A stretch of DNA of 22,014 nucleotides from Kudoa neothunni (GCA_964304625.1 OZ199839.1:11577236-11599249); one strand, 5' to 3'. Numbered from the stretch's first letter, positions 1 through 22,014 are shown. The notes: generated by a model from the sequence alone, not told the origin. Numbers and translations are program-made.

Positions 1-1932
1 AATGTATGAGAGACATGAAATTCCTCATCATGACAAAAAATGGTTCACCAAATTGAATATGCGTATTGACTCCCAGTTAAGTATTTAATTTCGAATATAA
101 ACACTAAAGTTTTATCTTTAAAAATAATTTAGTTCTCTTATACACACATAATAATTTATTTAATAATATTAGATGAAAAACGAGGTAAATATATGCATAA
201 TTATTTTATACGAAAATAATTATAAATAACTTTTTTTAAATATAAAAAAATAAAATAAATTTACTTTATATCAAATTTTATCAAAAAATATTATTTTTGA
301 TTACATTTCTCTAATAGAGCGTTCGTATGGCGATAAGACAGAAGAGATACTTTTCCGTTTGTGTAGCTGGGAAACTAATAATGACCCCCTAAAATTTCAT
401 TTGTTCTATATCTATTCGCTGGATTTCAAATATAAGTAAAACTCATTATATTTAATATAAAAAAATCTAGATCGCTTAATTAAGGTACAATGACGATCAA
501 TTCAATGAGATTATTGAAAAAGATAAGGACAAAATTTATCAGCTTGAGCATTTGACAGTGCTCACGTTTAACCAACTGAAATTAAATGAAACTTCGAGTG
601 GACTATTAGAGTTGCTGCACCAAAAATTACAATTTTGAAGAATCAGTGACAATTTTATTTTAACAATTATGATACAATATTATTAATAGAAGATGGTAAA
701 AAATCATTTATTTATTTGACATACTCTGAATTTTCCATCGGAATATTTACCAATAATCTCGACCAATACGACAATTGGATGATGAGAGAATTTTCGGTTA
801 GGAATCAAAAGTTCACCGCGATTGGAAACAACTTTTATTGTATGGGTGGATTCACAATCTTATTTGCAACACATCACAAGTTGTATAATGTATAGGTTTT
901 ATTGATTAATCGATAATCACATTATTCTTTGAATCTAGGAAGCAAACCAATCTCAAACGAGTGACCAAAAAATCATTCATCCCTGTTACGTTAATGGTAT
1001 ACAAGAAATTTTTGACCCTAATAGGAGTGGAGAAAACTGCAGACAACGATTAATATCAGAATATAGAAAAACATACATTGGGAAATATGACCTGAACGCC
1101 TGCATTAACTTAATTTCTTCAGTTATTCACGATTCAGATTTTAAGACTTGTGGTACTGAAAAACGCTGTAACTTTTCAAGTCTAAAGAAGGGAATCTTTC
1201 CTAGTGATGTCAACGAAGTCATGGTATAAGTAAAATAAATATATGAGTCACAAGAAATGTAGATATACAATGATCATTTCAGTTTTGATGGTCAGTCGCT
1301 TGATTCACTTAAAAAGGAATTGATTCATCATTGGGATCGAAATTGTGTGCTTACTTCGAATGAGGCATACCAAATTTTAAATAAGATATGATAAATATTA
1401 AATTTTAATGTGGTTGCTTCCATTTGAATGTCATTTTCACGTTATTAAGCGATCCCTTATTAAAGAATAATGAATTAGTCATATCCTTGACAAAAATGTA
1501 CATTATTAAATTTAATTTCCATTCATAAAAGGTCGATTGATTACCCCATATCACATTTTCACCATATATTTTTCGATCCATTATATGCTTCTATAGTTGT
1601 AGATGATGAGAAAATATCAATGTGAATTGTAAATGTGTTTGTGGCCAATTTTGTTTAGAATTGATTTTCAAACTAAAGCTCATTCTTCATTATATATCAG
1701 TTTGGAGTATACGACAGAAACCTGGATAGAACATGAATCTAGCGTTTCAACATTATCATTCAGAGAAGATGGAACCCAACAAAAATTCGTTCTATTTTCA
1801 ATCCGAGTTAAATCGTTTAAAATTCTAACTACGGAATTAACAATTTTTATTCTAGTCTCACAATTTGCGTTGGTTTATGTGGTATGCAAAATTCGGCGAT
1901 TAAACTCAAAAAGTTTGGGCAAAAATTATTAA
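1..1932 (+). pseudogene. GDA1/CD39 (NTPDase/ecto-apyrase)-like gene, copy A; 5'-truncated by the window, catalytic motifs degenerate, two unresolved junctions (pseudogene or pseudoenzyme)
   Basis: Manual splicing gives exons <1-80, 173-184, 318-435, 485-~597, ~650/690-889, 939-1223, 1263-1364, 1409-1497, 1532-1621 and 1659-1932, with short GT-AG introns (e.g. 436-484, 890-938, 1224-1262, 1498-1531, 1622-1658). The peptides follow the order of CD39 as recalled. EFSVRNQKFTAIGNNFYCMG matches [32 protein letters not shown]...ENC...YIGKYDLNACINLISSV...KTCGTEKRCNF matches DPCFHPGY...TPC...GIGNYQQCHQSI...YCPYSQCAF. WDRNC...CFHLNVIFTLL matches KKFC...YCFSGTYILSLL, and IDFQTK matches IHFIGK. A C-terminal hydrophobic helix ILTTELTIFILVSQFALVYVVC is followed by KIRR. 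No canonical splice solution exists at 1365-1408, and only a weak one at ~598-689. Confidence 0.7.
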
Positions 1933-2412
1933 TAATTAATATCATATGTATTTCTCGTTAAAGTAGATTATTTAACCAAAAAGTGTATGACTGTATATTT
2001 TTTTGTTTGCACGTTCGAAATACATTATTGAATTGTTGTTGCCCAATTTTAGTATATTTTAAAGGAAGCTGTTCTAAATTTTTTATATAGAGAATAATAT
2101 TTTATTCGAATAAACTATTTTTTAGCAAAAATTTGGTATCAATTATGAAAATATATATTATAAAATCTTTCAACACTTATTTTAAAGTTTACGTTTTGAA
2201 ATAATGTTAGAATCGAATTATTCCTCCAAATTCTGTACAATTGTTATATACCGTTTCAATTTAAATAAGGTTTATTTTTAGCACCGTTCAGTTAACTTTA
2301 CTAATACTAATACATTCCAAATATATTTTTAATTCTTCGTATATAGATTATTAAAAAAATAAATGTAATATATTTATTCGGAAAATGTTATATGGTTTGA
2401 CAGATTACATAC

Positions 2413-2444
2413 TAGTAATGTGAGTGGTTACACTCACATTACTA
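2413..2444. repeat. Perfect 14-bp inverted repeat (hairpin) with 4-nt loop
   Basis: TAGTAATGTGAGTG-GTTA-CACTCACATTACTA; the arms are exact reverse complements. Confidence 0.9.
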
Positions 2445-2681
2445 ATCCCCATAAAACCTTACAAGGCATAAGTCACCAATTCTTTGGCAACGCACAAAAT
2501 TAAAACAATTGATTTTAAAAGTAGAAAATGTAACTGCTATGTATTTTAATTTAATTTCTACCTTAATTTATTTTTTTACCATAACGAGTTAATATAGAAT
2601 TCATTTTGAACAATAAACACATCTTTTGGATGAATAATTAAGTAGAAATTTAACTATAATAATAAAATATTGTAAAGGAAA

Positions 2682-2954
2682 TTACTCAGTTATAGTAATA
2701 TTTTTAAGTTTTCTGGCATTTATACTGCGTATTTCTCGTTCAAAATCCGTTTGATGTTTACTACTATTTAAACCATGATATTTCAAGCAATGTCTTAAAT
2801 CAGAAAAATGAGCGAGAGGCAATTCTGAATGGAATAATTTTTCGTTTTCTATCGTCAAATTTACGAAATTTGTCATCTCTGTGACGGTTACCATCTTACC
2901 ATCACTTATGAAAACATTAATGTTGGAGTCATTTCCATTATTGTTTGCGCCCAT
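2682..2954 (-). CDS. 90-aa ORF with a SAP-domain-like helix-extension-helix motif; small gene or transposon fragment
   Basis: ATG-started, stop-free 270 nt in very AT-rich DNA. SDLRHCLKYHGLNSSKHQTDFEREI fits the SAP spacing ELKxxLKxxGLxxSGxKxxLxxRL at the L, L, K, G, L and S positions, but lacks the usual G and K. Confidence 0.35.
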   Translation of the reverse strand: MGANNNGNDSNINVFISDGKMVTVTEMTNFVNLTIENEKLFHSELPLAHFSDLRHCLKYHGLNSSKHQTDFEREIRSINARKLKNITITE

Positions 2955-3489
2955 GCCTTCGCTGGTTTTGGAAAAATTTTATTATTTTATATTTCTCAAT
3001 TAACGGCCTAACTCAATTTTTATTTCTGTCCTTCATTTCGTCACCAATTGAAAACAAAAATCTCAACGCGTCTGAAAAGTTACGAACCACACGTCGCTTC
3101 TAAATATCCATAAAAAACATAATTAATTACAAAATTTTTTATTTATATTCATAATAGTTAAAGAAATGTTTTGAAAAGTTAAAGAGATAAATAATTTATT
3201 ATAATCATATATGTAAATTAATTTTTAAATATTTCTTCAAATTACGAACCGCACGTGTTACACTGAATGTCAACGACTTCTAAATTATATTTATTACTTT
3301 ATGATAATCAAAATAGTCTGTAATATTTTTAGAATATAATGGCACATTAGAATTCAAACTTTCAAAATTAAACAATATTTTAGTTTTTTGTGGTCGAATT
3401 TTCTACAAAATCCAGCCATATGAGCTTAACTAAAGCATAAATATCTACCAAAAAAATATATAAACTAAACATCTTATTTTATCATAATA

Positions 3490-3760
3490 AACCATAATCA
3501 AATTTATTTATTTTATTAAAAAGAACAGCAAAATAATTGGTGATGAAAAGATTAAAACAAATGCGCAAAAAGGTGTATTTAGATGCGACAGGTTCTACAA
3601 ATACCTAATATCTTCTATTATTAACTCGGATCTTTCTAACCTATCAAGAAGGAAAATATCTGATTAATTATAGACAATGATAAGTAACGATTCAAATCCT
3701 AATATAATACAGACTTAACTAACACTGTTAGGGAATGAATCAGAAGGTTTCATAAAATTT
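3490..3760 (+). mobile_element. Degenerate Mutator-type (NOF/Foldback-like) transposase fragment
   Basis: KRLKQMRKKVYLDATGS (~3548-3600) is followed by TMISNDSNPNIIQT*L (~3675-3722). This resembles the recalled LxLDATGS...EMISxxHxxxxIxxWL blocks of NOF-FB-like transposases. Stops and frameshifts are present. Confidence 0.45.
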
Positions 3761-4519
3761 ACAATTAAATTTTGTGGGAATTTAGTAATCCTGTCCAACA
3801 TCTATAATAGTAAAAAAATTATTGTAAACGAATAGACGAAAATAAGCTAAGTTTAGCGATAGAAATGAAATAAACGTGCCCTTTACAAAAACCACAGTGT
3901 TTTTCTTTCTCCCATAGTTATGTACGGTTTTTTTCTTTTGAGTCTACATATTCATAGTTAATAGATATACCAATATTTTTAATTTAAGTTGCAAAAGCTC
4001 AACTTTATTAATTAATAAATAGTAAAAATTGTTTATACATCAACTAAACAATTCTCTAAGTAGAATTTCAAAAATGCGTGCTTATATGACATTGTTTATG
4101 TTCGATTAACTGGAACTAAAATTGCTGGTCCAAAATTTTTCAGATAATCGTGGTTCGACTGACTGCATATCGAGAGAAAACTAGATTGAAATAAAAAAAT
4201 TATATAAATTTTTCAAAAAAACTAGGCGAAGTTTAAGAATTTTGTGAAAATAGTAAATTTGTGGTGATTGGCTAAATATCCTACCTTTTTAAATAGAATA
4301 ATGACATTAATTAAATCATAAATGTGTTTCTAAGACAAAATAAATATGGAATTGTTTCGTCTACATCTACATCTACATACTGAAATATAGTAAGTCGAAA
4401 ATAAATCAACGGCATCGAATCAGGTACTCTAAATTAGATTGATTTATTGAGAAAACAATTTATAAGATCAGCGCACACACGATTACTCGACTTGGTTAAC
4501 ACAGCTAAGTAAACAAATA

Positions 4520-5740
4520 GCGGGCATCTTACCGGTGATTGTAATACAACCAATGCAATACACACCTCTAACATTGAAATTAGGCGCTGGCTATTCTTAC
4601 GACAGTGAATATCATTTTTCCTACTTTAGATATTTCTAATCTGAATTTGAAAATGTGTGAATACATTTTTTTCATGTAGAATTTTTACTATTTATAAATT
4701 AATGTTAGTTATCTTAGTTCATACGTTTTTGGAATTATCCATTGCATTCACCTAATTATTACGATAATAAACCAGTTATTTTTACATTTATAACAATTTA
4801 TGTATATTTAAACCACAAGTTTACCTCAGTTGTGACGATGTAACTTTATTTGCACATGATCTCATTGATTGGTCCACGTGTTGACGTTATGATCTGACAC
4901 GAATTAATTGTATGAACTGTTATCATTTTATAAAATGTTTACATCATAATTTAGCAAGTATTGATGATTTTTTTTAATTTTAAATAAAATAGACTCAGCC
5001 GAAAAAATTATACGCCACCAGTTGATAATGAATGCTATGTAACATTAAAATATAAATCATAAAACAAACATAATCAGGAACCTATATTTGGTCATTTTTA
5101 TAATCCCTTAAGTTTTTATCAAAAATATATATTAAAATATTTTTAATCAGGAGTCCAACAATAGTTAATCTGCTTCCCCTAGGTCTTTCGACAAATTTGA
5201 CGTTGGATTGAATAGGTATATCTCTAAAAATATTATTATAAGCAACCTCAAATTATTTACTTTTATATTTATTATGATTCTTTTTTTGATTTAACATTTG
5301 GTTGCAGTTATGTAGGTAAATACATTGCTATCATCTAATATTATGTGGATTTACGCGTTTTCTTCAGTATAATCATCAACATAACTTAACTTTTATATTA
5401 TATTAATAAAATTCACTCTCAGTTTTAGGAGATATAATTTTTTTGGGAACGTTTGTGTTGGAATTCGTGCTGTGACTACCACATTACATTGGTCCAACTT
5501 GATCAGTTTATATAGGTTTTATATCTGCATTTAAGTTACTCGAGGGGATAGGATAGATTTGGTTAATTCATATTTGTAAATGCCTTAAAATTGTATCACA
5601 TTATTTTCAAAATAATTTATCGCATTTATGATCAATTTCATCTTTGGTCCACATTGGTGGAAACTATCAATAAGCGCTTCATTTTTTCTAACGCCATAGG
5701 GGAAGGATTAATACTAAGAAAAGTGCCAAAAAATTAAAAA
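4520..5740 (+). pseudogene. Heavily decayed GDA1/CD39-like pseudogene, copy B
   Basis: Collinear fragments lie in shifting frames: TLKLGAGYSY (~RVKGPGISKF), RLSRKNYTPPVDNECY at ~4990-5040 (~[17 protein letters not shown]), SPTIVNLLPLG at ~5152-5185 (~NPCxPxG), and CLK/LYHIIFKIIYRIYDQFHLWSTLVETINKRFIFSNAIG at ~5581-5701 (~CFSGTYILSLL...W...KI...WTLG). Many stops. Each match alone is weak; the order supports the call. Confidence 0.45.
4570..4893 (+). repeat. Left arm of a ~320-bp diverged inverted repeat (partner ~5845-6177)
   Basis: 4838-4881 matches the reverse complement of 5866-5909 at 42/44 nt. 4588-4656 matches the reverse complement of 6076-6144 at 58/69 nt, ungapped (hand count). Confidence 0.9.
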
Positions 5741-5844
5741 CCTATACTGCAATTTATTATCTTAATTTAAAAAAATACGCTTTTTGAATAACATAGATGT
5801 TTTATAGACCTTTAAAATTAGACTTAGTAACGCTCTCAATAATC

Positions 5845-6177
5845 TGATGAAGTCATAGAGCATTGACACGTGGACCAATCAATGAGTTCATGTGTAAATA
5901 AAGTTACATTATCGCAATTAGGAAAACCTGCTGATTTGAATATGCGTAAACAGCAAAAAGAAAGAAAAAGAATAGATCTTTGGTCTTAGTGAATGATAGG
6001 AAGTCAGCAAAAATGCCCACAACTTACAAATTAATTGGATTAAAATAACAATTTGTAAAACCTGAAAATTCTATAACATTTTCAAACTCAGATTTGAAAC
6101 ATCTAACGAAGGAAAAAAGACATTCATTGTCACAAGAATAACCACTCGCTTAAAATTATCTAACTTCAACATTTTAG
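5845..6177 (-). repeat. Right arm of the inverted repeat; inverted partial paralog of the 5' part of copy B
   Basis: The minus strand reads ASGYSCDNECLFSFVRCFKSEFENV and LRIFKSAGFPNCDNVTLFTHELIDWSTC. The left arm reads GAGYSYDSEYHFSYFRYF*SEFENV and LCIFKPQVYLSCDDVTLFAHDLIDWSTC. Some differences are synonymous (TGT/TGC, GAC/GAT, GGC/GGT). Confidence 0.85.
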
Positions 6178-6284
6178 CTTAATAACAACCAAAATACATC
6201 AGAAACAGCATCGCAAAAGTACAGAAACAAATTTATAATTTCAAAAGAATTAAATAACGATGGGGGAATATGACATACAGTTGG

Positions 6285-6971
6285 TTAGATTGGTTGAATT
6301 TTAAAATGAAGACTGATCAACGAAAATACGAAACATTTCAAATCTTGAATCAGGTAATAGAACAATGTCAACCCCTCAGGATCACTAAAAGTTATTGTTA
6401 TGGCAACAATGTCACAATAACGAAAATTATTACTTTGATTTGTTTACATCATTAAGCGTTCCAATTTTGTCGGTGGCGAATGAGATATGAGTTGAGCCGC
6501 ACACAATTTCCAATTCCTAATCGCTGTATCAACAACACCAACCACACAATCAATCATTTACTTGGAGAGCTTCTTCTTTTGGTTTAGGCCAATTTTCGTC
6601 ACTTTCATCCAGAATCTACACACAAACACACATATCAATTGATACTCCAAATGGATCCATTAAAATCACCTGAGATTCAACGATAATGCGTCTGAACTCA
6701 TTCATGACAGGTTTACGAACAAAAACCTATAAATTCAATTATTTGTACACATTCCCAGCCATACAATAAGTTTACATTTTTACTAATGCAACGTTCTTTT
6801 CGATAGTTGGATGAATTGGAATAACGTAACAAGCCTACCGCATGATTATACATTGCTATTGGATGTGATCAGCTCAATTTTACCGTCAGGTCTCAGCTCA
6901 AACTTTAGATATTCGAGACCGTATTTACCGCTGTGGCCAACGTAATACCTCAAATAGAAATCCTCCTCCAT
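6285..6971 (-). CDS. mago: Protein mago nashi (exon junction complex core subunit), 146 aa, 6 exons
   Basis: complement(join(6285..6384,6434..6516,6562..6615,6670..6726,6776..6834,6884..6971)), with five GT-AG introns of 49, 49, 54, 45 and 49 nt. Translation: [146 protein letters not shown]. It aligns without gaps to human MAGOH as recalled. Confidence 0.98.
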
Positions 6972-6998
6972 GCTCGATAGTGTCCTGATCGTGTGCGC

Positions 6999-7030
6999 AT
7001 GCTTACGCACATCGTAATATGCGTAGGCAT
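6999..7030 (-). promoter_or_regulatory. Stem-loop with UACG loop just upstream of the mago start, overlapping upstream AUGs
   Basis: Minus-strand RNA AUGC-C-UACGCAUAU-UACG-AUGUGCGUA-A-GCAU forms 13 bp (one G-U) with one C-A mismatch, 28 nt before the mago AUG. Function and inclusion in the mRNA are not demonstrated. Confidence 0.4.
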
Positions 7031-7220
7031 TGTCCAGATGCTTTCCAAACCAACCTGAATCTTAAATTTACTAATTTTACGATTAAAATTTTTTGAATAT
7101 TTTCAATTTACTCGAAAAACAACAAAATTCTTGAAATGTTTTTAAAAATAAACCCTGCGCATTCACACGAAATCAGAGGAAATGTCAGTAGTTGCATTTC
7201 GGTGTAAATAAATTTAATAT

Positions 7221-7275
7221 GAATTTAATTAATTAGAATTTAATTAATTAGAATTTAATTAATTAGAATTTAATT
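7221..7275. repeat. Tandem repeat, 15-bp unit GAATTTAATTAATTA x3.7
   Basis: Exact copies at 7221, 7236 and 7251, and a 10-nt partial copy at 7266. Confidence 0.95.
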
Positions 7276-7766
7276 TGCGACTTGTCAAGCGCAAACAATG
7301 ACGCATGTAAACGTATTAAAAACTAAGAATAAAGTGTTTCCAATCTTATTTCGATCGCGTCCTACTTTTTCTTAAAAAATTCCCTGCCTCACCTCTTCAA
7401 AAGTATTGATTTTTTTAAATTAACCTTCCCTGTACTGCTCGGAAAAAATCACACGCGTTCCGATGAGGTCCGGACGGATCCCAGAAAAAACTATTTGGAT
7501 GGCCTTTAATTTTTGTGTCTTGCATTAAACAATTTTTCAACTATTTATCAGCCAAAGTACAGTATAGCGATGGGAGTCGGTATATTTCGCGAGAATTCGG
7601 CTAGAAGTTCGTAGCGTAAAAAAACATATTTAGTAATGTAAATAAATTTAATTAATAAGATATACATATATATATATATATATTGGAAGTGTATTATCTG
7701 TAATATTTTTTTAAATTGGTGTTCAGCCAAATAGGAACCTATTAGCTCCAATTTTTGTTAGCAATA

Positions 7767-8531
7767 CAGTAAGTAACCAATTTCACGCACTTTTTCGGGT
7801 GCCTCTTGTTTATTATTTAGTTAGGTCAATATTTAATGCCATAAAACCGCTAATGTATCGCATTTTTAAATATTTATTATCTCGACTCCTAATGGCATCC
7901 TAGAGATGAAAAATAAAATAATCAAAACCTATAAATGTTTGCAGAATCTAAACATAGAAATTATTTACGTGTAGCACAATTTAACTCTTTTGATGAAGAT
8001 GTATATGAGTGGTGCATTAGGCGGATACGAAGCAAAAAGATTGTAGTAAGCGTTGTCACGATAATCATCCAGAGAAATCAGTTGGTAAAAGAAAAAGGTT
8101 TACCTTCGTGTGCAATTTGTGGAGGGTTCCGTTGTTAACAAAAATCAAATTTTATTAGCTAATCCGATGATGCTACACCTGAAATTACCTCAGAGTAGAC
8201 CAATCAAATCAAAACTTTTTTTAAAAGATACTCTGAAAATTTTATCTACAATGTAGACGAAACTGCCTTATTCTACTGATAACAACAAGAAGAATATTGC
8301 ATAGATCGTTGAAAAATATTTTTGTGCTGTTAATGCATTTATCGAGTTTTAAGTATCGTTTAAAAATTGAGGTATAGTTAACTAGTCTTTATAAAAGAAA
8401 TTCAGTCATTATTAAATGCTAATTTTTTTCTGAAATAATTGCGTCTGCGAGTGGGTGAAATTGGATGTGATCGGTTTTATGCACTTTTTTTCTTGGTCCC
8501 GAAGGGATTACGTGAAATTGGTTTCTTACTG
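7767..8531 (+). mobile_element. Internally deleted pogo/Tigger-family DNA transposon (765 bp) with both TIRs and TA target-site duplication
   Basis: The left end is TA|CAGTAAGTAACCAATTTCACGCA and the reverse complement of the right end is TA|CAGTAAGAAACCAATTTCACGTA, both followed by TTCGGG. A subterminal CATAAAACCG is present in inverted orientation at both ends. Inside are a CENP-B-type HTH remnant (FDEDVYEWCIRRIRSKKIVVS, ORF 7935-8138) and the first DDE Asp block YSENFIYNVDETALFY* (8229-8279). Confidence 0.92.
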
Positions 8532-8628
8532 TAATCGTATTTATCCAATGAATTATTGAGTTAATATTTTTGTGCTTTTGATAATCCATCTTCGTCTCAA
8601 TTCTGCTATTTTGATTGTTTGCTATTAA

Positions 8629-10099
8629 ATGAAACTGTGCTTTTTCAAAATATTTGTTGTGCTATATTTCCCAAATTTGTTTGCAGGTATATAAACATAT
8701 TCATCATATTCTGATAATATGTTAGATCCCATATTACCCTCTTACGAAAGAGATGAGGGAGATTGGCCTGTCGGTGTACAAATAAGTATGGACAATGTCA
8801 TTGATAGATGGTTCATTGACATCCAAGATGCTAAATGCAAACCTCTCGAATACCGAGGTATCAAAGGAAACTATAATAATTTCGCCTCAAAGGGACTATG
8901 TGAACTTCACGGTATTTTTCTAAATTAGTGTAAATTTCTGATAATATCTTGCAGGAACGTTGACAACAAAAGAAAAAATTCAAGGATGCAAAAAACCCAT
9001 GCATCCAGGACATTGCGTAAAAAACACACAAACAAGTAATCAATTCTACTTTGATCAAACAAACGCCAAATGTGTTTCGTTCCCATATAATGGATGTGGG
9101 GGGAGCTTTAATCGTTACATTGATGAAAAAGAATGCAAATTATATTGCTTAAGTAAAAAAATATGAACATTTCCATTGGACTAAATAATTTTTGTAGATA
9201 AAAGGAATGGCGGGCTTACAAATTCTGATGATGACAAAATAAAAGCAGCCGATCCTGAGATCATATTCGCAGTACCAAATACATTGGATTGCGAACTTAG
9301 ACCTGATGTTAAAGACAAAGATCCAAACACAGCAATTATTGCTGATAGAGAGAAAAACAAGTGTGCTTATGCAGCAGTCTCATTAGACTCAAACACAAGA
9401 GGGATATTCAATTCGTTTGGCGAATGTGTCAAAACATGTTTTCGTATAATTATTATTCATAATATCTTCGTCTTACATAATCTAGCATATCCAAATACAC
9501 AATCTACTGGTGATGGTGTAACGCAATATAACAGGAGAATAGCTGCATGCGACATTGGTCCAACTCAAGTTGCTATAGATAACCCAGATGACCCATCAGC
9601 TGATATTGAGTTCCGATATTATTATGATCGTGAGAGAAAAGTGTGTAAACGCATGGAAACCAAACGAGCTACAGTATCATCCGTCTTTGTTCCAACAAAA
9701 AATGATTTTCCAACTATGGAAATGTGTCATAGTTATTGCGGAGCGGGTACTTACGTTGATTCATTAAAAAAATTAAATTATAAAGTCTTTCTATGGTTAT
9801 ATCGGATTAAAAATTATTTTGAATTCGGAATAAATTTAGAAAAGTATAAAAAAGAAATTGTGATCGAAGAAACCTGCGTTAAAGACAAAATGGGTGAAAT
9901 CGGCAAAAACGAAAATGCATTCAAAGTTAAAAGATTCTATTATGATGCATCTAATAAGAAATGCAAAGCTTTTTATTACAAAGGATATGATGGGAACTCT
10001 AACAATTTTAAAACGGGGAATGAATGCATGGCGATCTGTGGTGGTCATTACAACAATGGAGACCCAATTATTGTAGAGGATATTCCTCAAACAGTATAG
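8629..10099 (+). CDS. Secreted five-domain Kunitz/BPTI-type protein, 402 aa, 6 exons
   Basis: join(8629..8686,8726..8911,8955..9152,9198..9443,9486..9746,9840..10099), with five phase-1 GT-AG introns of 39, 43, 45, 42 and 93 nt. Exon 1 is a signal peptide, MKLCFFKIFVVLYFPNLFA. Each later exon is one Kunitz unit with motifs such as FYFD..C..FPYNGCGGSFNRY....C...C and RFYYD...KCKAFYYKGYDGNSNNF....C...C. Track ORFs 8719, 8960 and 9284 are pieces of this gene. The last two introns are stop-free multiples of 3, so they are inferred from splice signals and composition. Confidence 0.93.
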
Positions 10100-10530
10100 G
10101 TATCATTCATATCGCCTTTTCTTTTCGAAATCATTATAAATTCAATCAATCAACTCTTTACTTCTTGATTTCTTATATATAAATTATTATATACAATTTT
10201 TGAGCATTAATAAACTTCAAACAAATTATTTAGTAGGTTTGTAATGTTACGAGTGTGTGTTTTTTAACTTGAGAAATACCTTCTTTGTGATCTAGTTTTG
10301 CGTTTCTGTTTAACCACCAATAGAGTATCAATTTCTTTATTATCAAAGCATTATTTTTACGGGAAAATAGCAAATAATAAACTGACATGTTTTGTTGTAA
10401 TGTCACATAGTCGCACTATTTCTACCGCCTAATAATTTGTAACTCTAAGTTAACTCTCACCACGAATAACATATTTAAAAATAAACTAAGTAAAATATAA
10501 AACCTTCAATAAAAATGGTTAATTCTTCAC

Positions 10531-10689
10531 GTAAATATGATGATGATGATGATGTAAATATGATGATGTAAATATGATGATGTAAATATGATGATGATGA
10601 TGTAAATATGATGATGTAAATATGATGATGATGATGATGTAAATATGATGATGATGATGATGATGATGTAAATATGATGATGTAAATAT
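10531..10689. repeat. Compound minisatellite: GTAAATAT x9 separated by (GAT)n with n = 5,2,2,4,2,5,7,2
   Basis: Read directly; no mismatches in any unit. Confidence 0.97.
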
Positions 10690-12849
10690 GTGCCAGGAAA
10701 TTACTAACGTTTAGGGTAACTCAAACATAAATCGGCTACCTGTATGACAATAAACCATTAGACAATCACGTCATTATAACAACAGTAGCGCGAACTATTC
10801 AGTGTTGCTTGGGAGCGATTTCGCTTAGTGATGTTTCTTAATTATATTCAAAAAATATATTAATGTTTCAAATTAACTTATAGAAGCGGTAAAACTAAAA
10901 AAATTTAAAGGATCATAATTGAAGACTTGGATTTTTAAATTTTAATCCTGATCATTGTAGAACAAGGATGTACTAATCCCGGTGTTCTTTTAACGGTATC
11001 GTGGCGTGGTCCGGCGATAAATAATTTAAGGTCTGCATCATACTTTTCTGCATTCTCAATTTATATAAATTACCGTAAACTGTCTTACAAAACGTCATTT
11101 TCCCCCCGGGGATTTTTCAAAGCCGATTCTGATCCGGCTCAAAAAGTTTAAGCCACACTTTTTGGGTAAGTAACCAAAGATATAAAGATAGAACAAAATC
11201 TAGGAAATTGATTTTTATTACTCAAATTAATCTCTTGGTCTGGCACCAACTTCAGTGCCCTCTTTCTCAAAAACACATAAAAATCGTGTCAATATCAACC
11301 TAATTATTTTAAATAATAAGGAATATAAATAAACCGCTCGCACTGAATTTAATCATTGAAAATTCAACTTTACGATCGATTTCAACTAAATCTAAGGACA
11401 TTTGCTTTTTGACAATACAGTAGCGCAGGGTTATTACTAGGGGTTAAGATCGGTTTTGGTTTTAAAAATTTGTTTTTTAATTAATATAATTTAGCTTCTA
11501 ATATTAATATATGCTGTATTTTAAACAACGAATGACTAAAATAATAATCAATCACATTTTATATATTTTTGGTAATGGTAAAATATGCGGCACTTATAGG
11601 ACATCCTCTTACGCATGCTTTTTCGTATTTCTTTTTCACGACTCTTGATAATAAAATAAAAGAATACGGAGAGTAAAAATTCAGCTGAAAATAATAACTT
11701 CAAAATTTTGAGAATTATTCATCCGGACGTGGTCGAATGTCGAATACACGTGTAATCTCCATCTTTTTTCAACAAACATTGAATTATTTTGTTTGTTTCT
11801 TAGCTATTATTTCAAAAGTTATTTATTGTTATTATTTAGATTTTTTACTATTGATATATAAACAATTTTATACAAACTAACTTTAAAAATAAACTTTTTG
11901 CAAATTTCACCAAAATATCTCTTGTTTAACTATAAAAAAATAGTTTTGAATTTTAAAAAATATATCTTTATGTTGTACAATTTGTTTTAGTTTATAATTT
12001 TTTTTCCTAAATTTCTTATTAGAAAATAAAAATTTATTCAATTTTTATTATTAAAATTCAGAAACCTATTCTTTTTAAATGAAAATAATGAGTTTTTTAC
12101 CTCGCAGTATCTGTAATATATCGGAAAAAAAATAATACGCTAAAATCTTATTGTTTTATAAGATTTTTTATGTGTCAAAATTTAGTCACAAATTCGGCAA
12201 AATATAGGAATTGAGAATTTTCCAAAGTTAAAACACAAAATATGATGAACCATTATTATTTTTATTGGTACACATATAGCAGGGTGAAACCAATAAATTT
12301 ATAAAAATAACAATTCTTTGAATTTATAATAACAATATTTTGCGTTCATCGAATGTTATACTAAATACACACGTAAGAATTCTTCTAATAAAGTAATAAT
12401 TTCATATAATCCATCTTAAGTTATTTACCTATTGAAAGTAAATATTTATCTAAAATATAGTGTTTATTTATTATTAAAAAACTTGTCACTTCTAAAAAAA
12501 TTGAAAAAATTCATTTTGAGAGCACGTAGTTATTTTCTCGTTTTGAAACCATTCACATTTAAAACCAACAAAAAAATGTATAGCTAAATTTGATATTGTA
12601 AAATTTGTTTTTATAAGGTATTGGACGCATTTCCCTTATAATATTAGGATTAGCACGACATCCAAAAACTATATAATATTAAGGAACAACGCGCGTACTC
12701 GATTATATTCCAGTTAGTGTTGGTCTCTCTGTAGCGCATCTTACGCCAGGCCTCGTAGACATAACAACATCGATATAAAAAATATCATTGTCGGACGTTT
12801 GACACCATTTGGAGTTTTGGGTTTACGACAATCATCTATATGAGTCAAA

Positions 12850-13880
12850 TCAATTCAACAATATTTAAATCACCAATTAACATTATTACATCATTGAATT
12901 CATTTTTCCATGAACGTAACACGGATACATCATACGAGAAAATTATTATTGCACAATGCGTGGAGCGAATAAATTTCCTAATAATGAAAAATCATATAAA
13001 CATTCTATTTAAATGCTAAAACAAGTTAAATGAAGAAAATTGAATATTTACTCCGCTAAATTACAAGAATGAAGAGGTTTGGTTTTTCTTAAGTAACGTC
13101 TTATATCACTGGTTCCTAAAGACCAACTTCTTTTCTTTTTTTTACATTAATTTATAATCCATTTTCACAATTTTTTGGTCAATTATGTTTTAAAAAGAAT
13201 TCTTTAAATAGGTAAAAATAATTTTTTTGGACCTATAGACACTTCTTTACACTCCGTATAAAATATTCTAAATGTATTTTTATTTATTTCTAGATCATCT
13301 TTCTTCATTACGACTACACAAGATTCGTTCAGCTTGAATCATATCAAATGCATGTATCGTATGATGAATCTAAAGATTCGATCAAATGGTTGTTAAATGC
13401 ATTAGTTGATGCTGATCCTTTATTGATGACAAATTTATGAACAATAATAACAGTGAAATATCAATGCCTCTAAAAGTGCTTTAACATAACGTTTGAATCT
13501 ATTTCCCTATTGATATGTATATGTAGGTTTCATCTCTGTCAAATTTCCAGCGTGAAATTAAATAGGAAAATATGGTATCAATTCAGAATGGAAGCTCTTC
13601 TATGAACATTTTAAATTAAATAGTTTATATTATTAGTAAAGATCAATTTTATTCCTATGTGATAAATTATGTGGCACAGAGTCCCCAACGTCTCTATTTA
13701 TTTTGATAAAATTAGGAACTCAATCGTAAACTAATGGATAATTGGCTTAGGTTCAGCCGAAAATTATAATAACTGCAAAAATTTTAGATTGGAATCAATA
13801 AATGGCAAAATTAGATGCATTATTAAAATTTTTCAGCTCCACATGAAATCTTAATATATTTCTTCAGTTACTTGAAATCT
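12850..13880 (+). mobile_element. Degenerate MULE (Mutator, ZSWIM1/3-like) transposase
   Basis: Collinear blocks: DESKDSIKWLLNAL (~13363), LFP...ICRFHL/FQREIK*ENM (~13500-13575; CxxH motif), and YFDKIRNSIVN*WIIGLGSAENYNNCKNFRLESINGKIRCII (~13699-13825; ~YFxxNW...W...TNNRLESxNxKLK). Many stops and frameshifts; boundaries are approximate and no TIRs were found. Confidence 0.8.
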
Positions 13881-14260
13881 ATGAGAATTGAAAGAAAATT
13901 ACCAATAATAATCGGGTTTTTAAAATCATATGTTACCATAACTAACAACGAAACTTTCAGGCATTACTATACTCATAGGAAACCCAACACATCTAATATT
14001 GTTTGGGAGGAATTATCCAAAATAAAAATTAGAAGGAGACTGAAGATAAGTAGAGCATTTGTTATTGGGCTCACCAAAAAACAATCAATAAAAGTCGAAT
14101 TAATAATTTTTTTGGATAAAATTTGGATTTATGAATTAAAAAAATTGTGACTCATTGAATTTAATAAAACTAACATTTTAACAAATCAATAAAATTGTTT
14201 TCAAGAAAAATAACATAAAATGTGGAAAATATTAAGATTACGACAAACAAAAGGTAAAAA

Positions 14261-15960
14261 CATAGTTTCATTCAAAAATACGAGGGAGTTCGGAAGCCTC
14301 GGTTTTTTTGCTATTTATAGCCATTGGAATCACTTGTGAAAAGTTAGCTGTTACCTGTGTCACATTAAAATTTGTAACGTGCGAGTTGGTGGAAAATTTG
14401 AATTAATTGGCCAAGAATGTCGTAAATTAGCATTCATTACTATTATTAAATCAAGAAAAGTACGGTTTTGGTACATGTGAGATGATTAAGGTATGGTTTT
14501 AATAAACAAATTCTCCACTTTAAATTGAAAAAAAACTTTTACACATTTCTTGGAAAAAATATAATCGAATATATTTGTGGAATCAAATTTTTAATATCTC
14601 ATTTATTCTAGAAGATATTCCCATCCATGCTTATAGTTAATCCCTAATGGGGATTAAATGGATCCATGAAAATAACCACTTCCTTAACCAAATTCCTTTT
14701 GATAAATAATAATAAGTGTGGATTAAGATTATTAGAGGATATTCTTAAAGTGCTTGAGTATTTATTATCGGAATATAGAATTGACGATATTTTAATGTAT
14801 TCGATTTGTATTTGTCTGAACAATTAATGAATTGTTCGAGTTTGGGGAAAATTTACATATATTATATATTTTGATAATATGCCACGAAAAAATTTCTTTG
14901 TTTGATTGGTACTTAGGTATGAATTCCATTCTCTAAGCTCATTGTTTCTAATTCGTATATTTGTTTATATTATATTATTACGTCAAATCTTGGTTTTATA
15001 ACTTTTTGTTGAATTTATTTCCCTTAGTGAAATTAAAAAATTAATTAATTTTTTTAAGAGTTGCAAATAATTTAAAAATGAACGATTAACGCTGATAAAA
15101 TACGAAAATAAAATGAGCCTACGGAATGGAGATGTTTTGTGGCAATTAGGATTCACACCATTGGACAGTCATAGGTAATAACAGGACCTGTTAAATATTT
15201 CACTAAGATTTTTGTTACGTGTAATGTTTATTCCACCTTATAGGGAATCCCTTTGTTCAATTATTCATATTTTATATTGATACCTGTATTATCATGATCA
15301 TCATCCGTGCTTAAAGTTTATTTTTAGCAGGTTAAAGACTTAACTGTAACATGTAAGCTTCAATTTGAGAGTATGGATGCTTGTTGGATGATTGTATTTG
15401 TCTTTACTCATCAATTATTGATAAAATCGTCCAACGCTGGATCAACCATTAAACTATACGTAAAAACTTTATGAAAGACTGATTTAAATTATTTATAGAC
15501 TGGTATTACATTATTACTGAAAGATGGTCTGATTCACATAACACCATTCACATTTGAGAACAACATTTCAACTACTCAGAGTATTATTATTAAAATTCAA
15601 GATGGAGTGTGTTCATGTATCATCGTCTTTTTATAATTAAATTTCTAATATTCTTAAATTTTAGTGGAACATGTCAGTAATAATGATGAAATTCTGAGTG
15701 CCATAGGACAATGTTTACACCATTCCATACAAAAGTTTGGTCAAATTTATTTCTCACCTTCTTTTCTGCCTGAAGCCTATTTTGTGTTTCCATCCACCTT
15801 TATGAATTCGATGTAAACAGTTATATATGTTTATAAAGTACATGTGGTAGTGCAAGGATACACGTCAGATTGTTGGGATTAAAATAATAGTTAAGTAAAT
15901 TTGTTTAATGCGATAACCACAGTAAGCGTCTTCAATGATTGAATCATGCATTACCCCCGC
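14261..15960 (+). pseudogene. GDA1/CD39-like pseudogene, copy C
   Basis: In order: an N-terminal hydrophobic stretch SVFLLFIAIGIT; EKYG (~14455); EDIPIHAYS*SLMGIKWI (14611; ~ETPVYLGATAGMRLL); EDILKVLEYLLSEY (14735; ~DRVLDVVERSLSNY); and LRNGDVLWQLGFTP (15119; same spacing as LDLGGASTQVTFVP). Open exons 15331-15459, 15499-15616 and 15665-~15813 are joined by 39- and 48-nt GT-AG introns and encode GITLLLKDGLIHITPFT (~GYKKVVNVSDLYKTPCT). A last block is IVK*ICLMR*PQ (~MKKFCAQPWEE). Several in-frame stops. Confidence 0.65.
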
Positions 15961-16241: not shown

Positions 16242-18900
16242 TCCTCTAAGGTGAGCGAAAACGACCATCCTCCAAAGTCACTTGAGGTCCAAACGACCCA
16301 AGTTTTTTATTCGATGAATTAACTTAATAAATAAAGATATAAGGTTTTATTAAGTTTAGAATATTTCTGTCGAATAAATTTTAAAGAAAAAGCCGAACAC
16401 TTGTGTAATTAATCCGTTACTATCTCATCCGTGCCATGTCAGGTTGAATCGAAAGTAATTGTTGTATAAAACCGTTGATGAATAATCTTATATTTTTAAT
16501 AAATAAACAATTCAAGTGAATTGACTTAATGATTAATATTTTTATGGAAAATTTTAAATTTCATATTTAAGTTATTGTTCAAGAGAGTATTTCTACTCAG
16601 CTCGAATAGTTCCCCCGATCAAAAGGTGCCTGCACAAAAAATGAATAAAACTGATAAATATGTTGATTAATATAAATCTTTGACAAGTAAATTTGTAGAT
16701 AACTCTACGGAATCATCTGAAACGTTCATTAAATCGGTGGATGTGAAAATACTGAGGACTCAATAATCAGTAAAAGCGGCATTGTGTGGGGTTTTAGTAA
16801 ACCGATAACGTCAAGAAAAGGCTCGGCAATACCATGAAAACACCGCCTAGCCCTACTTCGTATTTTACTCAGCAGTTTGAAAGCATGTTAGTTTGCTTTC
16901 ATCCTATGTACTATCATAATTTTTTGAATAAATAATCTAATATATCAATTTTATGAAGATTTCATTTCAGAGGTGATTGAATTCTATTAATAAATTTCTC
17001 CAAATAGATTATATTTACTTTTTACGATTCTATAAATGTATTTTATGTGTGTAAATGGAAGTTTGCCATATCTATTTTAATTAGCGGTCACCTGTGAATA
17101 ATTAAATTCTTACAAAAAATAAACATTAATTAATTTTATAAAATTTTTATTACATTCTATGTAAGTAAAATGAATAACACAATCGAACCTGGATATTAAG
17201 CAATTTTTTGGGAATGGAAATAAATTACACAATGGGGAGATTTTACGCAATACAGGCTATTAGCGCGAGCGCGTTACGTATAAAAAACAAAAATTTATTC
17301 GGGTTTAAAATTTAAAATTACCGGTAATTTCAGTTTGTTTGCATTAATTTTTGATTATATTAAATAGGAACTCCATAACTGGATGTGTTTTGAAAATAAT
17401 GCTGTTGAGTTTTTGAACATAAAAGTTTTATAATTAAATTATTTGAATATTTGAGTTCCGCAATTGACACAAGCGTTTTATCTTTTACAAGGTTTGGATT
17501 GATATTTCATTAAATCTATCTACTATATGCGCTTCAGTTAAAGCTATTGATTCTCCGTTTCTTCAATGTTGTTGATTTCGTCATAATTTTTTATCGAAAA
17601 ATTAAAGTTGATAAACAATTAAATAATGTGTCAAATTTTTCAACATTTTTTCGGAAAAATCATGATTTAAGTTTTCATTATCAAATAATGTTTAATTTAA
17701 TATTTTGGAGAGTTAAAATACAAGGTTCAAAAAGTCTAGATTCTCTTAAGAAATTTTAAGTGATAGTCGTTGATACGCTTTCCGTTGCATGTTTTAAAGT
17801 TTAAATAAAACCAAAATGATATTCTTAAATAAATTTGAGTTATTCATATTTATTATGTTTCACTATTTCTATCCTAGTGACATTGTTGGGAATTTTCCCA
17901 AAAAATTAATCATAGTTTGATTATTTACATTGTTGGTTTCACCATAAAATTTTTTATAATTAATTCCAAGCCTATGTTTAAATCCCAAGAACCAAACATT
18001 ACTACCGGTGAAATTGTCTATGTTTATGGATTTAACGTTATTTTTGTCTTTTTCACGATGACGTAGATGACGTAAGCAAGCACAACTTTTTTCTCATTTG
18101 CATTTTAGCTATCCATGTAAAGAATAAACTATCTAACTCTGTGTACTTGTCTTCATTTATTTTTTTTTTGAAGCCGAAATAGTAGAATTAATGATATCAA
18201 TTTGGAAAGCTAAAATTATATTAATAATAGGGCGCCTTGAAAATATATTATATTTTGTTTCGATAATTTTATATTATTAGATGGTTTAGGATGTTTAAAG
18301 ATCGTTGCATTTTCTCCTTTGAGTGATTTAATCGAATTATAATATTCGATAATTTCAATTTTTTCAGCCACCGTTCGCTAATTCCTTAACATTTTTTTGC
18401 AAAATTCAAAAATAGGATTAATTGAGGATGGAAGTGGACTAGATGTTACGCAGTAGCGAGATTTTAGTTTTAACGATATATCTTAAATTTATATTTCTCT
18501 AATAAACATTTTCATCTTTTTTCGCTCCGGTAACATTAATTTAAATAATATACAAGCAAAGTGTAAGTAAACAATTTAAAACATCCGTTATATTTCAACA
18601 AACTTGAGAAATTACGCAATATCCAGCTTCGACTGTACTTGTTTAACTACACTCTTATTTATTCTTAGAATATATTGACTACAAAACGTCGTGGGTTAAA
18701 TTGGACCACTAAAGTCCTTAAAGGATAATATTTTTTCAACACCTAATTTTTATTCAATCGGTTTAAGATTTTAAAAGAATGAAAAATATTCAAAAATAGG
18801 ATATTAAATAGAATTTCACGAATTTCTGATTATTACATACATAATACCTGGTAAATTAATCATGATTTGAGGCCTAATAGACCTCAACGTCCTTAACGGG
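16242..18900 (+). mobile_element. Decayed piggyBac-family element with TTAA flanks
   Basis: The left end is TTAA|TCCTCTAAGG and the reverse-complemented right end is TTAA|CCCGTTAAGG, both with a subterminal TTGAGGTC. Transposase remnants: IISKSGIVW / NTMKTPPSPTSYFTQQFESMLVCF...LNKII*YIN (~16762-16950) and GSGLDVTQ*RDFS (~18429-18468; ~GSGRNVTxDNFFTS). Confidence 0.65.
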
Positions 18901-20185: not shown

Positions 20186-21026
20186 CAATCAAAACTCGAT
20201 TATACGGGAAATTTGGAACCAGCGATTTTCACTCCAGATAGCGAGGTTCCGGTTAATCGAATGCAGAAGCTATTTGCATAATTAAATTTAATCCTAAACG
20301 TCAAGTCCGCTTGTACAAAAAGAAATTTTAATCTAAGCAACTCAAACTTACAAGTTGTTTATAGGTTTAATTTTTTAGAATCTGCTATATTTAATTATTT
20401 CCGGTCCCTAAGAGCGGAACTGTTGATCGGAAAGAATTAAATATAGGCAAAACTAATGCCACCAGAATATTATTTATCGTGGCAACTGCACGATTGGGTT
20501 ATTGAAATTTCTACTTAAAGAATTTTTTATTTGATTTATAGATAATTTGGCTTTTAAAATTTAAATTAAATATAATGGCATATCTATTAACCAATAACAT
20601 GGAGACTTAAAGAAAAAACAGTACATAATTAAAGAAGGAAAACACGTCTACAAAGAAGTAATCCACTTATTTAAATAATCGGTAGCTAATGTTTATTTAA
20701 AATAAATACATGTTTACCTTCAAACTAGTATCAATTTATATAAGAACTGAATGCTTAACTTAAATTTTAAATGAGAAATTTATGAATAATTAACCTAGAA
20801 GTATTTTTGTTTAAAATATTGCATTGGTATATATGTTACATTGTATATATCGGGAGTAGATTGGTGGTACTTTTATCCAGAATTATGATTAAATAGCTGT
20901 TCCAATTTTAGATTATCGAAATTCCGGATAATCGAATATTTATCAACACGTAATTTCAATAAAATCCAAATAAAATTTAAAATATCTTCTGTATAGTGCG
21001 AATTCAAGATTATCGAGGTTGGCCTG
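20186..21026. mobile_element. Remnant(s) of non-autonomous pogo/Tigger-type MITE
   Basis: The left end is CAATCAAAACTCGATTAT and the reverse-complemented right end is TA|CAGGCCAACCTCGATAAT. Repeated TTCCGG(A/T)TAATCGAA boxes occur at ~20247 and ~20922. These could be two separate fragments. Confidence 0.45.
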
Positions 21027-22014
21027 TATTAGTAATAGCGAAATAATTTATTTATTTATTATTTTGTTACTCTGTGTTTTTATGTATTTTGAATAAAATA
21101 GAATTAACACAGTGAGAGCCATTAATCCGTCCAAGTTTAAATGGTGTTAATATTTTGGCTCTTTCTCGTTTTTTGTTTCTGCCCGATAGAGATAATTTCA
21201 ATTCTATTTTTAAAGAAGAGAAAATGACTGCAGGCAGTTTAATTTAAATTAAGGTAAATCATTTGTTTTGTTAAGTCTGTTGAAATGATGCATACAAATG
21301 ATGTTGAGATAAAAATCATTTTTTATATACTTGGATATGCAAACATGTTTTATTTTAATGACATTTTTTGATGTCTTCACCATTGGTCATCTTATCGAGA
21401 ATTTTAAAATATATCATCCCATATTTATTCATGGTCGATTCAACCTGAATATTTATACATCGTTCAAATGTAACAATGAAATGACAAAATATTTCTAGCT
21501 GAGCTCTCCCTTAACTATCTCATATCCGAAAATGAGACCTCAATTTTAAATTTTAAATATTTATCTTTTGTTTCTTATTCAAATTTCATGGTCTTTGGCA
21601 TATGTGAATCTCGTTTTAATGATAGATTCATAGTTTCTTCTCTTAGGAATCTGGATAGTGGATTTAATAATGTAAAGGGAGTTGCATATAATCCTATAAA
21701 CTGCGCGTAGGTTTGTCTAAATTCTAAACTTTTCGTTTATTGTTCTTATGTGATTGTTCAGTCGTAATAGGAAATTACAGTCTATCAAAGATAAAATATT
21801 CAATTTTCTATCATCTCCATGCTTCTGAATCTTTACTACGCCTTTTTTATTGTAATATAATGAAAGCGTCTCAACAGCTTAAAAATTATCCTTTAAAATA
21901 TTATTTATTATCAATACATTCTTATCATTTTTTAAACTAATTTTTGAGTGTATTAAACCTTGTTTTAAACTATGAGAATAGCTGAAATTCTAAATGAACT
22001 GAAAATTCGTAGTA

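Follow-up and report, generated by a model that had tools for sequence, protein, structure and literature searches.

In the genome of Kudoa neothunni, a stretch of 22,014 nucleotides (C2:11577236-11599249; here called the window, meaning all of the DNA that was analysed) carries at positions 1-1932 a gene copy derived from the NTPDases. With a probability of about 0.8, we consider that this copy, copy A, belongs to a lineage-specific family of about 43 loci and was disabled recently, that two other segments once taken for its relatives are unrelated to it, and that the window is a duplicate contig. An original prediction, made from the DNA sequence alone, had placed in the window a cluster of three decaying apyrase-like copies (copy A; 'copy B', ~4520-5740; 'copy C', ~14261-15960) and an inverted fragment, with loss of the catalytic motifs of the GDA1/CD39 fold.

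Eighteen paralogous loci were taken for the family, and exon profiles were built from them for exons N2, P, X/Y, Z, C1, C2 and C2b and for the last exon. In copy A, nine profile matches were found in order on the plus strand (E-values 1e-13 to 1e-68), at window positions 2-85, 311-436, 480-635, 650-892, 942-1226, 1263-1385, 1409-1498, 1530-1622 and 1633-1929. These ordered matches show that the first of the predicted copies is real. Its exons are as follows, where ACR stands for apyrase conserved region.

1..80, plus strand: 3' part of exon N2, the ACR1-region exon (N2 profile E 1.5e-13, profile positions 17-43 of 43; GT donor at 81).
318..435, plus strand: exon P, C.W...IYSL.FKY (P profile E 4e-15; then a 49-nt intron, 436-484).
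485..889, plus strand: fused X+Y exon (X/Y profile E 4e-18 and 5e-28, in different frames and at overlapping profile positions).
939..1223, plus strand: exon Z, the Cys-rich region between ACR4 and ACR5 (Z profile E 1.8e-32; open frame).
1263..1370, plus strand: exon C1, IYNDHF...NC... (C1 profile E 3e-22).
1371..1408, plus strand: wrecked C1-C2 junction (side-by-side comparison with seven paralog junctions; three-frame read).
1409..1497, plus strand: exon C2, CFHLNVIFTLLSD (C2 profile E 8e-16; then a 34-nt intron, 1498-1531).
1532..1621, plus strand: exon C2b, ..FFDPLYASI.., family consensus F.DP.FGSI (C2b profile E 1e-13; then a 37-nt intron, 1622-1658).
1659..1932, plus strand: last exon, with a short serine/threonine (S/T)-containing stalk, the transmembrane helix LTTELTIFILVSQFALVYVVC, a KIRR... 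tail and the stop codon (open reading frame 1633-1932; counterparts in eight paralogs).

The window begins in the middle of exon N2 owing to a preceding gap of 200 N, and the first half of this exon is found only in an upstream twin of the window (L003:567-620). Exon Z lies between introns of 49 nt (890-938) and 39 nt (1224-1262). It keeps the five Cys of the NTPDase Cys-rich region, aligned with those of NTPDase1, and the last exon supplies a hydrophobic anchor followed by KIRR, so that the Cys scaffold and C-terminal membrane anchor ascribed to copy A are both present. The fused X+Y exon contains NETSSGLLELL as the ACR3 equivalent and YLTYSE as the ACR4 equivalent, followed by F.C, and exon C2 aligns with the NTPDase helix C(F/Y)S..Y..(L/I)L..GY. 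Exon C2b is by position the best, yet unproven, candidate for ACR5. The predicted motif positions agreed with this map in part. FYIYSL, with which exon P ends, is plausible as ACR2 by position only, whereas IEDGKKS lies about seven residues before YLTYSE, the ACR4 site according to the profile alignment and the model, and ISLE, offered as ACR5, sits in the variable stalk exon outside the ectodomain. Placements made by eye of ACR4 at FSIGIFT, ACR2 at KIHVYSYTD (exon N2) and ACR5 at YISLEY were dropped after profile-profile alignment with hhalign and comparison within the family.

Copy A is interrupted by four lesions. Three of them are frame breaks, located at about positions 1-6 (between ...WIKC and YERH... 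in a three-frame read), 621-626 (in a run of A) and 655-662 (in runs of T). Between the last two the third frame reads KNYNFEESVT, which matches the paralog consensus, and the 31-codon spacing in the X+Y exon is the same as in L011 and L014, two paralogs that lack the intron. The fourth lesion lies at the C1-C2 junction. A GTA...AG intron, 30-45 nt long, sits here in seven paralogs, of which copy A retains about 15 nt and no GT donor; stops occur in all three frames, and one of them, an in-frame TAA at 1406-1408, precedes the conserved Cys of exon C2 by three codons. Copy A is otherwise intact, with all its other exons and five introns (49, 49, 39, 34 and 37 nt). Because of the three frame breaks and the destroyed splice junction with its in-frame stop, copy A probably makes no full-length protein and is probably a recently disabled pseudogene.

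Copy A would instead be a working gene if these lesions were consensus errors of a low-coverage long-read assembly, which we regard as unlikely. Such errors would fit the location of two frame breaks in A and T homopolymer runs, the integrity of the other exons and five introns, and the 27 indels in 9 kb that separate neighbouring duplicate segments. The published description of the assembly also stresses low coverage for K. neothunni (PMC12239612). However, the lesions are four and separate, an intron shrunk to about 15 nt with no donor and an in-frame TAA does not resemble a homopolymer artefact, and the assembly has a quality value of 48.5 (PMC12239612). Window 1-2100 is also reproduced with 0 differences by the Logan k-mer contigs of two runs, although both runs were made from one sample, probably the source of the assembly itself. 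Next to nothing of the stretch occurs in RNA run X10 or DNA run X9, and very few parasite transcript reads are reported for the assembly data (PMC12239612). A genuine young pseudogene is highly probable, and a consensus error improbable.

The family to which copy A belongs is large and divergent, as had been predicted. With the 96-residue open frame of exon Z (939-1226) as a single query, 26 matches were obtained in the genome, which, the twin of copy A aside, are 20-43% identical to it and nearly all open. The Z profile raised this number to 48 matches at E<=0.01, corresponding to about 43 loci, several of them in tandem clusters, and the paralogs share 21-38% identity with copy A. In most loci the exons N2, P, X/Y, Z, C1, C2, C2b and last follow one another in this order, separated by tiny introns. 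In eight paralogs the last exon encodes an S/T-rich stretch, then a hydrophobic helix, then basic residues, and in one paralog a signal-peptide-like start was seen. Judged from these sequence features, the intact members look like type I membrane proteins with an NTPDase-derived Cys-rich ectodomain, an S/T-rich stalk, one transmembrane helix and a short basic tail, and we infer that they also bear a signal peptide. The pseudogenes and tandem clusters found in the genome fit the birth-and-death turnover suggested by the original prediction. No description of the family was found in the searchable literature.

Several other members were observed along the way. A second, more divergent one lies 9.8 kb before the window (L005:8736-9999, or C2:11565971-11567235; Y profile E 8e-16, Z profile E 9e-21), in a part of the assembly that is unduplicated, and is followed by a repeat stretch rich in serine, threonine and glutamate. 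Copy A shares its exon structure and substitute motifs with intact members of the family, but has four lesions and is cut by the assembly gap. Two further pseudogenes stand in tandem at locus L021 (C2:5844000-5853999); in each of them, both the Y exon and the Z exon are distributed over more than one reading frame. The youngest pair of paralogs seen, L022 (C3:2040662) and L025 (C2:7349612), is located on different chromosomes and shows 82-84% amino-acid identity. In the exon alignments A1 and A2, an 'invariant' final V or M proved to come from translation running on into the splice donor (codon|GTA or AT|GT) and to be no conserved residue; untrimmed exon open frames are a trap of this kind.

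The relationship of the family with NTPDases was examined exon by exon, by searches and structure models of single exons. When the Z-exon profile (A1) was compared with the 177,635 sequences of the PDB, the best match was rat NTPDase1 (3zx0), at E 0.059 and with all five Cys aligned. Against 1.84e9 proteins the same profile matched NTPDases at E 2e-5 to 8e-4, among them a fish NTPDase3 (P0011; E 6e-5), which itself matches Pfam GDA1_CD39 at E 1.8e-105. Six of ten single-stretch matches tested passed the Pfam GDA1_CD39 cut-off and one matched below it; the remaining three had no match to the model and look like fragments of the Kudoa family itself. Pfam places P0011 and the matched fragments at GDA1_CD39 positions 228-302. 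Two of the metagenome or Logan fragments (P0001 and P0017) lay on contigs of about 1 kb that gave no context.

In profile-profile alignment, exon Z aligned with a set of 106 NTPDase3 sequences over 99 columns (Prob 97.7, E 8e-12). The order of exons on the NTPDase3 template was N2 at columns 64-105 (ACR1), Y at 226-292 (ACR4 and F.C), Z at 281-383 and C2 at 420-455 (C-terminal helix; P 0.005). When the columns were shuffled 60 times for each exon, an equal score at the same place was reached once for N2 and never for Y, Z or C2. When the X+Y exon of paralog L011 was modelled with AlphaFold, its Y part reached a predicted local distance difference test (pLDDT) score of 84-95, and the top 47 PDB matches found with the model by Foldseek were all NTPDases, albeit weak ones (E 4.7e-3 to 0.2; 350,542 chains), in line with the predicted structural likeness. 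Taken together, these alignments and models indicate that the Kudoa family descends from GDA1/CD39 ecto-NTPDases. Two other results were set aside: a match of the X+Y profile to tubulin acetyltransferase among PDB sequences (E 0.37), which is a chance match, and an ESM Atlas feature search with the X+Y frame of L014, which gave a score of 0.75 and no lead.

The canonical motifs of ACR1-ACR5 are DxGSS, ATAGxR, GxEEG, DLGGAS and WxLG. In established NTPDase structures, the metal, the phosphates and the catalytic water are all bound by the loops and acidic residues of ACR1, ACR3 and ACR4. The K. neothunni genome contains one ordinary NTPDase above the PF01150 threshold, L001 (G000:C2:7278745-7279569; 119 bits), besides a second, weak locus below the threshold, and L001 keeps all five ACRs (DAGSTG, ATAGMR, LEG, ELGGAS and WTYG). 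A pattern search was positive for L001 only and found no canonical ACR motif in any of the 18 family loci, including those in which all family exons are open. At the corresponding places the family has YGIVI.K.., IYSL.F, (S/T)SGL and (Y/I)(L/I)(S/T)..., and these substitutes are conserved among paralogs, as YG(I/V)VI.K at ACR1, as (S/T)SGL.ELLKYNY at ACR3 and as a shortened hairpin before F.IG.FTNNP.LYD.W at ACR4. Near the expected ACR5, F.DP.FGSI is conserved as well.

Between copy A and its paralogs, the ratio of nonsynonymous to synonymous substitution rates (dN/dS) was 0.2-0.42, and the pairs L010/L011 and L015/L018, whose divergence is moderate, gave 0.26-0.39; these values are rough because dS is near saturation. 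Ratios of 1.2-2.2 on two exons of L022/L025 were rejected as a sign of positive selection, as they rest on a handful of substitutions. Since paralogs have the substitute motifs in common and dN/dS lies near 0.3, the motif loss is old, shared and maintained, and occurred under selection before copy A decayed. The claim that catalysis was lost while the fold was still under selection is thereby upheld, and the opposite reading, in which the motifs eroded only after pseudogenisation, is rejected. An ecto-NTPDase ancestor would have exchanged the phosphate-binding loops of ACR1 and ACR4, the catalytic Glu motif of ACR3, and ACR2 for other conserved motifs. Copy A would then have diverged under purifying selection, and would have acquired its three frame breaks, the destroyed C1-C2 junction and the in-frame stop later.

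Because the ACR1-ACR4 motifs are replaced by other conserved motifs, the intact members are most likely non-catalytic surface proteins, that is, pseudoenzymes with a role in coat, adhesion or host interaction; the original prediction had suggested adhesins, nucleotide sponges or variant antigens as possible roles. Alternatively, they could bind or hydrolyse nucleotides, or another phosphate compound, through the new motifs, as neofunctionalised enzymes or nucleotide sponges. The conservation of SSGL..LLKYNY, NP.LYD.W and F.DP.FGSI across paralogs does imply constraint at the former active-site cleft, but the two glycine-rich loops for phosphate have been lost, along with the acidic residues of ACR1, ACR3 and ACR4, and the ACR4 hairpin loop is shortened in the model, which leaves nucleotide use improbable.

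Several points weigh against a family of NTPDase-derived surface proteins. No single exon of copy A or of the paralogs matched Pfam GDA1_CD39 (PF01150) at E<=10, and in a scan of the whole genome nothing within the window matched it even at that threshold. Exon X shows the expected spacing of ACR3, (S/T)SG...NY for EEG...NY, but its score was no better than that of shuffles (53/60), and hhalign gave misplaced or insignificant alignments for exons P, C1 and C2b, none of which could be placed. The AlphaFold model of exon Z alone had a pLDDT of 56 and was not used, and both the surface location and the function are read from sequence features alone. The collinear match to the GDA1/CD39 fold claimed by the original prediction was recovered for N2, Y, Z and C2 and not recovered for the other exons, and the likeness to the Pfam family emerges from profile searches and alignments rather than from Pfam matches of single exons. 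Strong significance in one exon only, the silence of Pfam and the failure of VIA-align to single out NTPDases would all suit a likeness that arose by chance or convergence in a Cys-rich extracellular domain of other origin. Even so, such an origin is very improbable: none of 60 shuffles attained a quarter of the exon Z score, three other exons fall at the places predicted by collinearity, and the model of an independent exon ranks 47 NTPDase chains first of 350,542.

Outside copy A, nothing of the family was detected in the window. With stops read as X and the HMMER filters off, the family profiles gave only negative bit scores outside 1-1932. A tblastn search with about 135 paralog exon peptides gave some 45 weak matches per kb throughout, kb 4-5 and 14-15 being no richer than the rest, and Pfam found nothing in the open frames of 'copy B' and 'copy C'. 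These segments consist of the following features.

4588..6144: 'copy B', a dispersed terminal inverted repeat (TIR) element of about 1.55 kb (self blastn; genome search).
13334..14690: a second dispersed repeat, whose last ~430 nt (14261-14690) are the start of 'copy C' (blastn to L010, 71% over 1.1 kb).
14691..15960: remainder of 'copy C', present nowhere else but in the upstream twin, with no family, Pfam or other coding signal (profile, genome, Pfam and tblastn searches).

The element at 'copy B' has terminal inverted repeats of about 300 bp, with arms at 4588-4881 and 5866-6144 that are 68% identical. It gave 78 matches in the genome at 66-88% identity, and at least 40 copies, 69-84% identical, are spread over all three chromosomes. 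The repeat at 13334..14690 has at least 38 further copies, often in inverted pairs 1.5-1.9 kb apart. Hence 'copy B' is an inverted-repeat transposon and 'copy C' is the end of a repeat plus unique non-coding DNA. Neither of them belongs to the family, the supposed inverted fragment was not confirmed, and the cluster shrinks to one of the three claimed copies, present as a pseudogene. That 'copy B', 'copy C' and the inverted fragment are relatives eroded past the reach of profiles can hardly be credited, for although the family is very divergent and has pseudogenes (two at L021) and clusters elsewhere in the genome, no profile score rises above zero bits there, the weak tblastn matches are spread evenly over the window, the TIR element accounts for all of 'copy B', another repeat accounts for the first 430 nt of 'copy C', and chance short matches to degenerate motifs are expected in DNA of 27% G+C.

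The assembly amounts to 40.26 Mb; three of its contigs are the size of chromosomes (17.15, 12.04 and 11.05 Mb), and another measures about 18 kb. It has been described as a curated K. neothunni assembly from yellowfin-tuna data, of 40.2 Mb with an N50 of 12.0 Mb, comprising three chromosomes and a circular mitochondrion, with a median intron of 49 bp and 5,316 predicted proteins; haplotypic duplication was present and required purging, and apyrase or NTPDase is nowhere mentioned (PMC12239612). The window is bounded at both ends by gaps of 200 N (L006:9801-10000 and L007:1-200) and is thus a gap-bounded contig. All of its 22,014 bases are 100% identical to C2:11537851-11559971, 39,385 bases upstream, and the sole difference is a 107-base unit (window 11290-11396) that stands twice in the upstream twin. 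The 9 kb downstream of the window show 99.5% identity, with 27 indels, to the end of the upstream unit. A 7.9-kb segment is found only in the upstream copy, a gap taking its place after the window, and contains two transposases, of the piggyBac and DDE_3 types, as well as one more family member. Since the window is a gap-bounded duplicate of upstream DNA and haplotypic duplication was reported for this assembly (PMC12239612), it is probably a leftover unpurged haplotig, although it may be a very recent tandem duplication. Either way, all of its content, including copy A, is counted twice in the assembly, and paralog counts are inflated accordingly.

Other features were noted in and around the window. 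The transposase fragments of the 7.9-kb segment are of the piggyBac type (L005:3953-4690, minus strand; DDE_Tnp_1_7, E 2e-37) and the Tc1/mariner type (L005:6911-7456, plus strand; DDE_3, E 1.5e-18). A multi-Kunitz gene occupies window 8629-10099 on the plus strand, with Pfam Kunitz_BPTI matches (E 2e-9 to 2e-13) in three open frames, 8695-8925, 8945-9163 and 9185-10096, and occurs in the upstream twin as well. The first exon of a Mago nashi homologue lies at 6849-7061 on the minus strand (PF02792, E 6e-10, profile positions 1-31), and an imperfect (ATG)n array with tandem units of 14-23 nt at 10531-10690 gives His/Ser/Ile-rich open frames on its minus strand. Seven more interspersed repeats (2652-3249, 3909-4161, 10792-11399, 11571-11783, 12323-12524, 17168-18574 and 20559-21029) share 65-82% identity with unrelated loci on other chromosomes, which is consistent with the repeat content of about 46% reported for this genome. 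The G+C content across the window is 25-34%.

Compared with the cell-surface NTPDases 1, 2, 3 and 8 (PF01150), the Kudoa family has the same five Cys in the Cys-rich region between ACR4 and ACR5, the same order of ACR1-region, ACR4-region and C-terminal helix exons, and, as predicted from sequence, a likewise extracellular domain with a C-terminal transmembrane anchor. It differs in that the ACR1-ACR4 motifs are all replaced and no exon reaches the Pfam threshold, in the S/T-rich stalk between ectodomain and transmembrane helix, and in its number of about 43 loci, against one canonical NTPDase gene detected in the same genome; the member in the window is, moreover, a pseudogene. L001 belongs to the same superfamily and the same genome, yet it has the ACRs and scores 119 bits on PF01150, where the family members score nothing. 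The trans-sialidase superfamily of Trypanosoma cruzi is an expanded surface family that includes inactive enzyme homologues while active members persist. There too, an enzyme scaffold is reused as a multi-copy, divergent, membrane-anchored surface family with pseudogenes. Its scaffold is the sialidase beta-propeller, in contrast to the two-domain ASKHA fold of NTPDases, and it has active members, whereas none of the 18 Kudoa loci keeps the motifs.

There is an outside chance that the family of about 43 loci forms the main variable surface coat of Kudoa, with pseudogenes such as copy A serving as sequence donors in gene conversion. If true, this would represent a system of antigenic variation or host-tissue interaction built on an enzyme scaffold in a cnidarian parasite. 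Myxozoan gene sets are very small, and about 43 loci come close to 1% of the ~5,300 proteins predicted for K. neothunni (PMC12239612); the family is therefore likely to be central to the surface biology of the parasite. Kudoa species are spoilers of fish muscle and in some cases agents of food-borne illness, which makes such surface proteins candidate diagnostic or vaccine antigens. The family would also offer a clear example of how the scaffold of an ecto-enzyme became a non-catalytic surface family.

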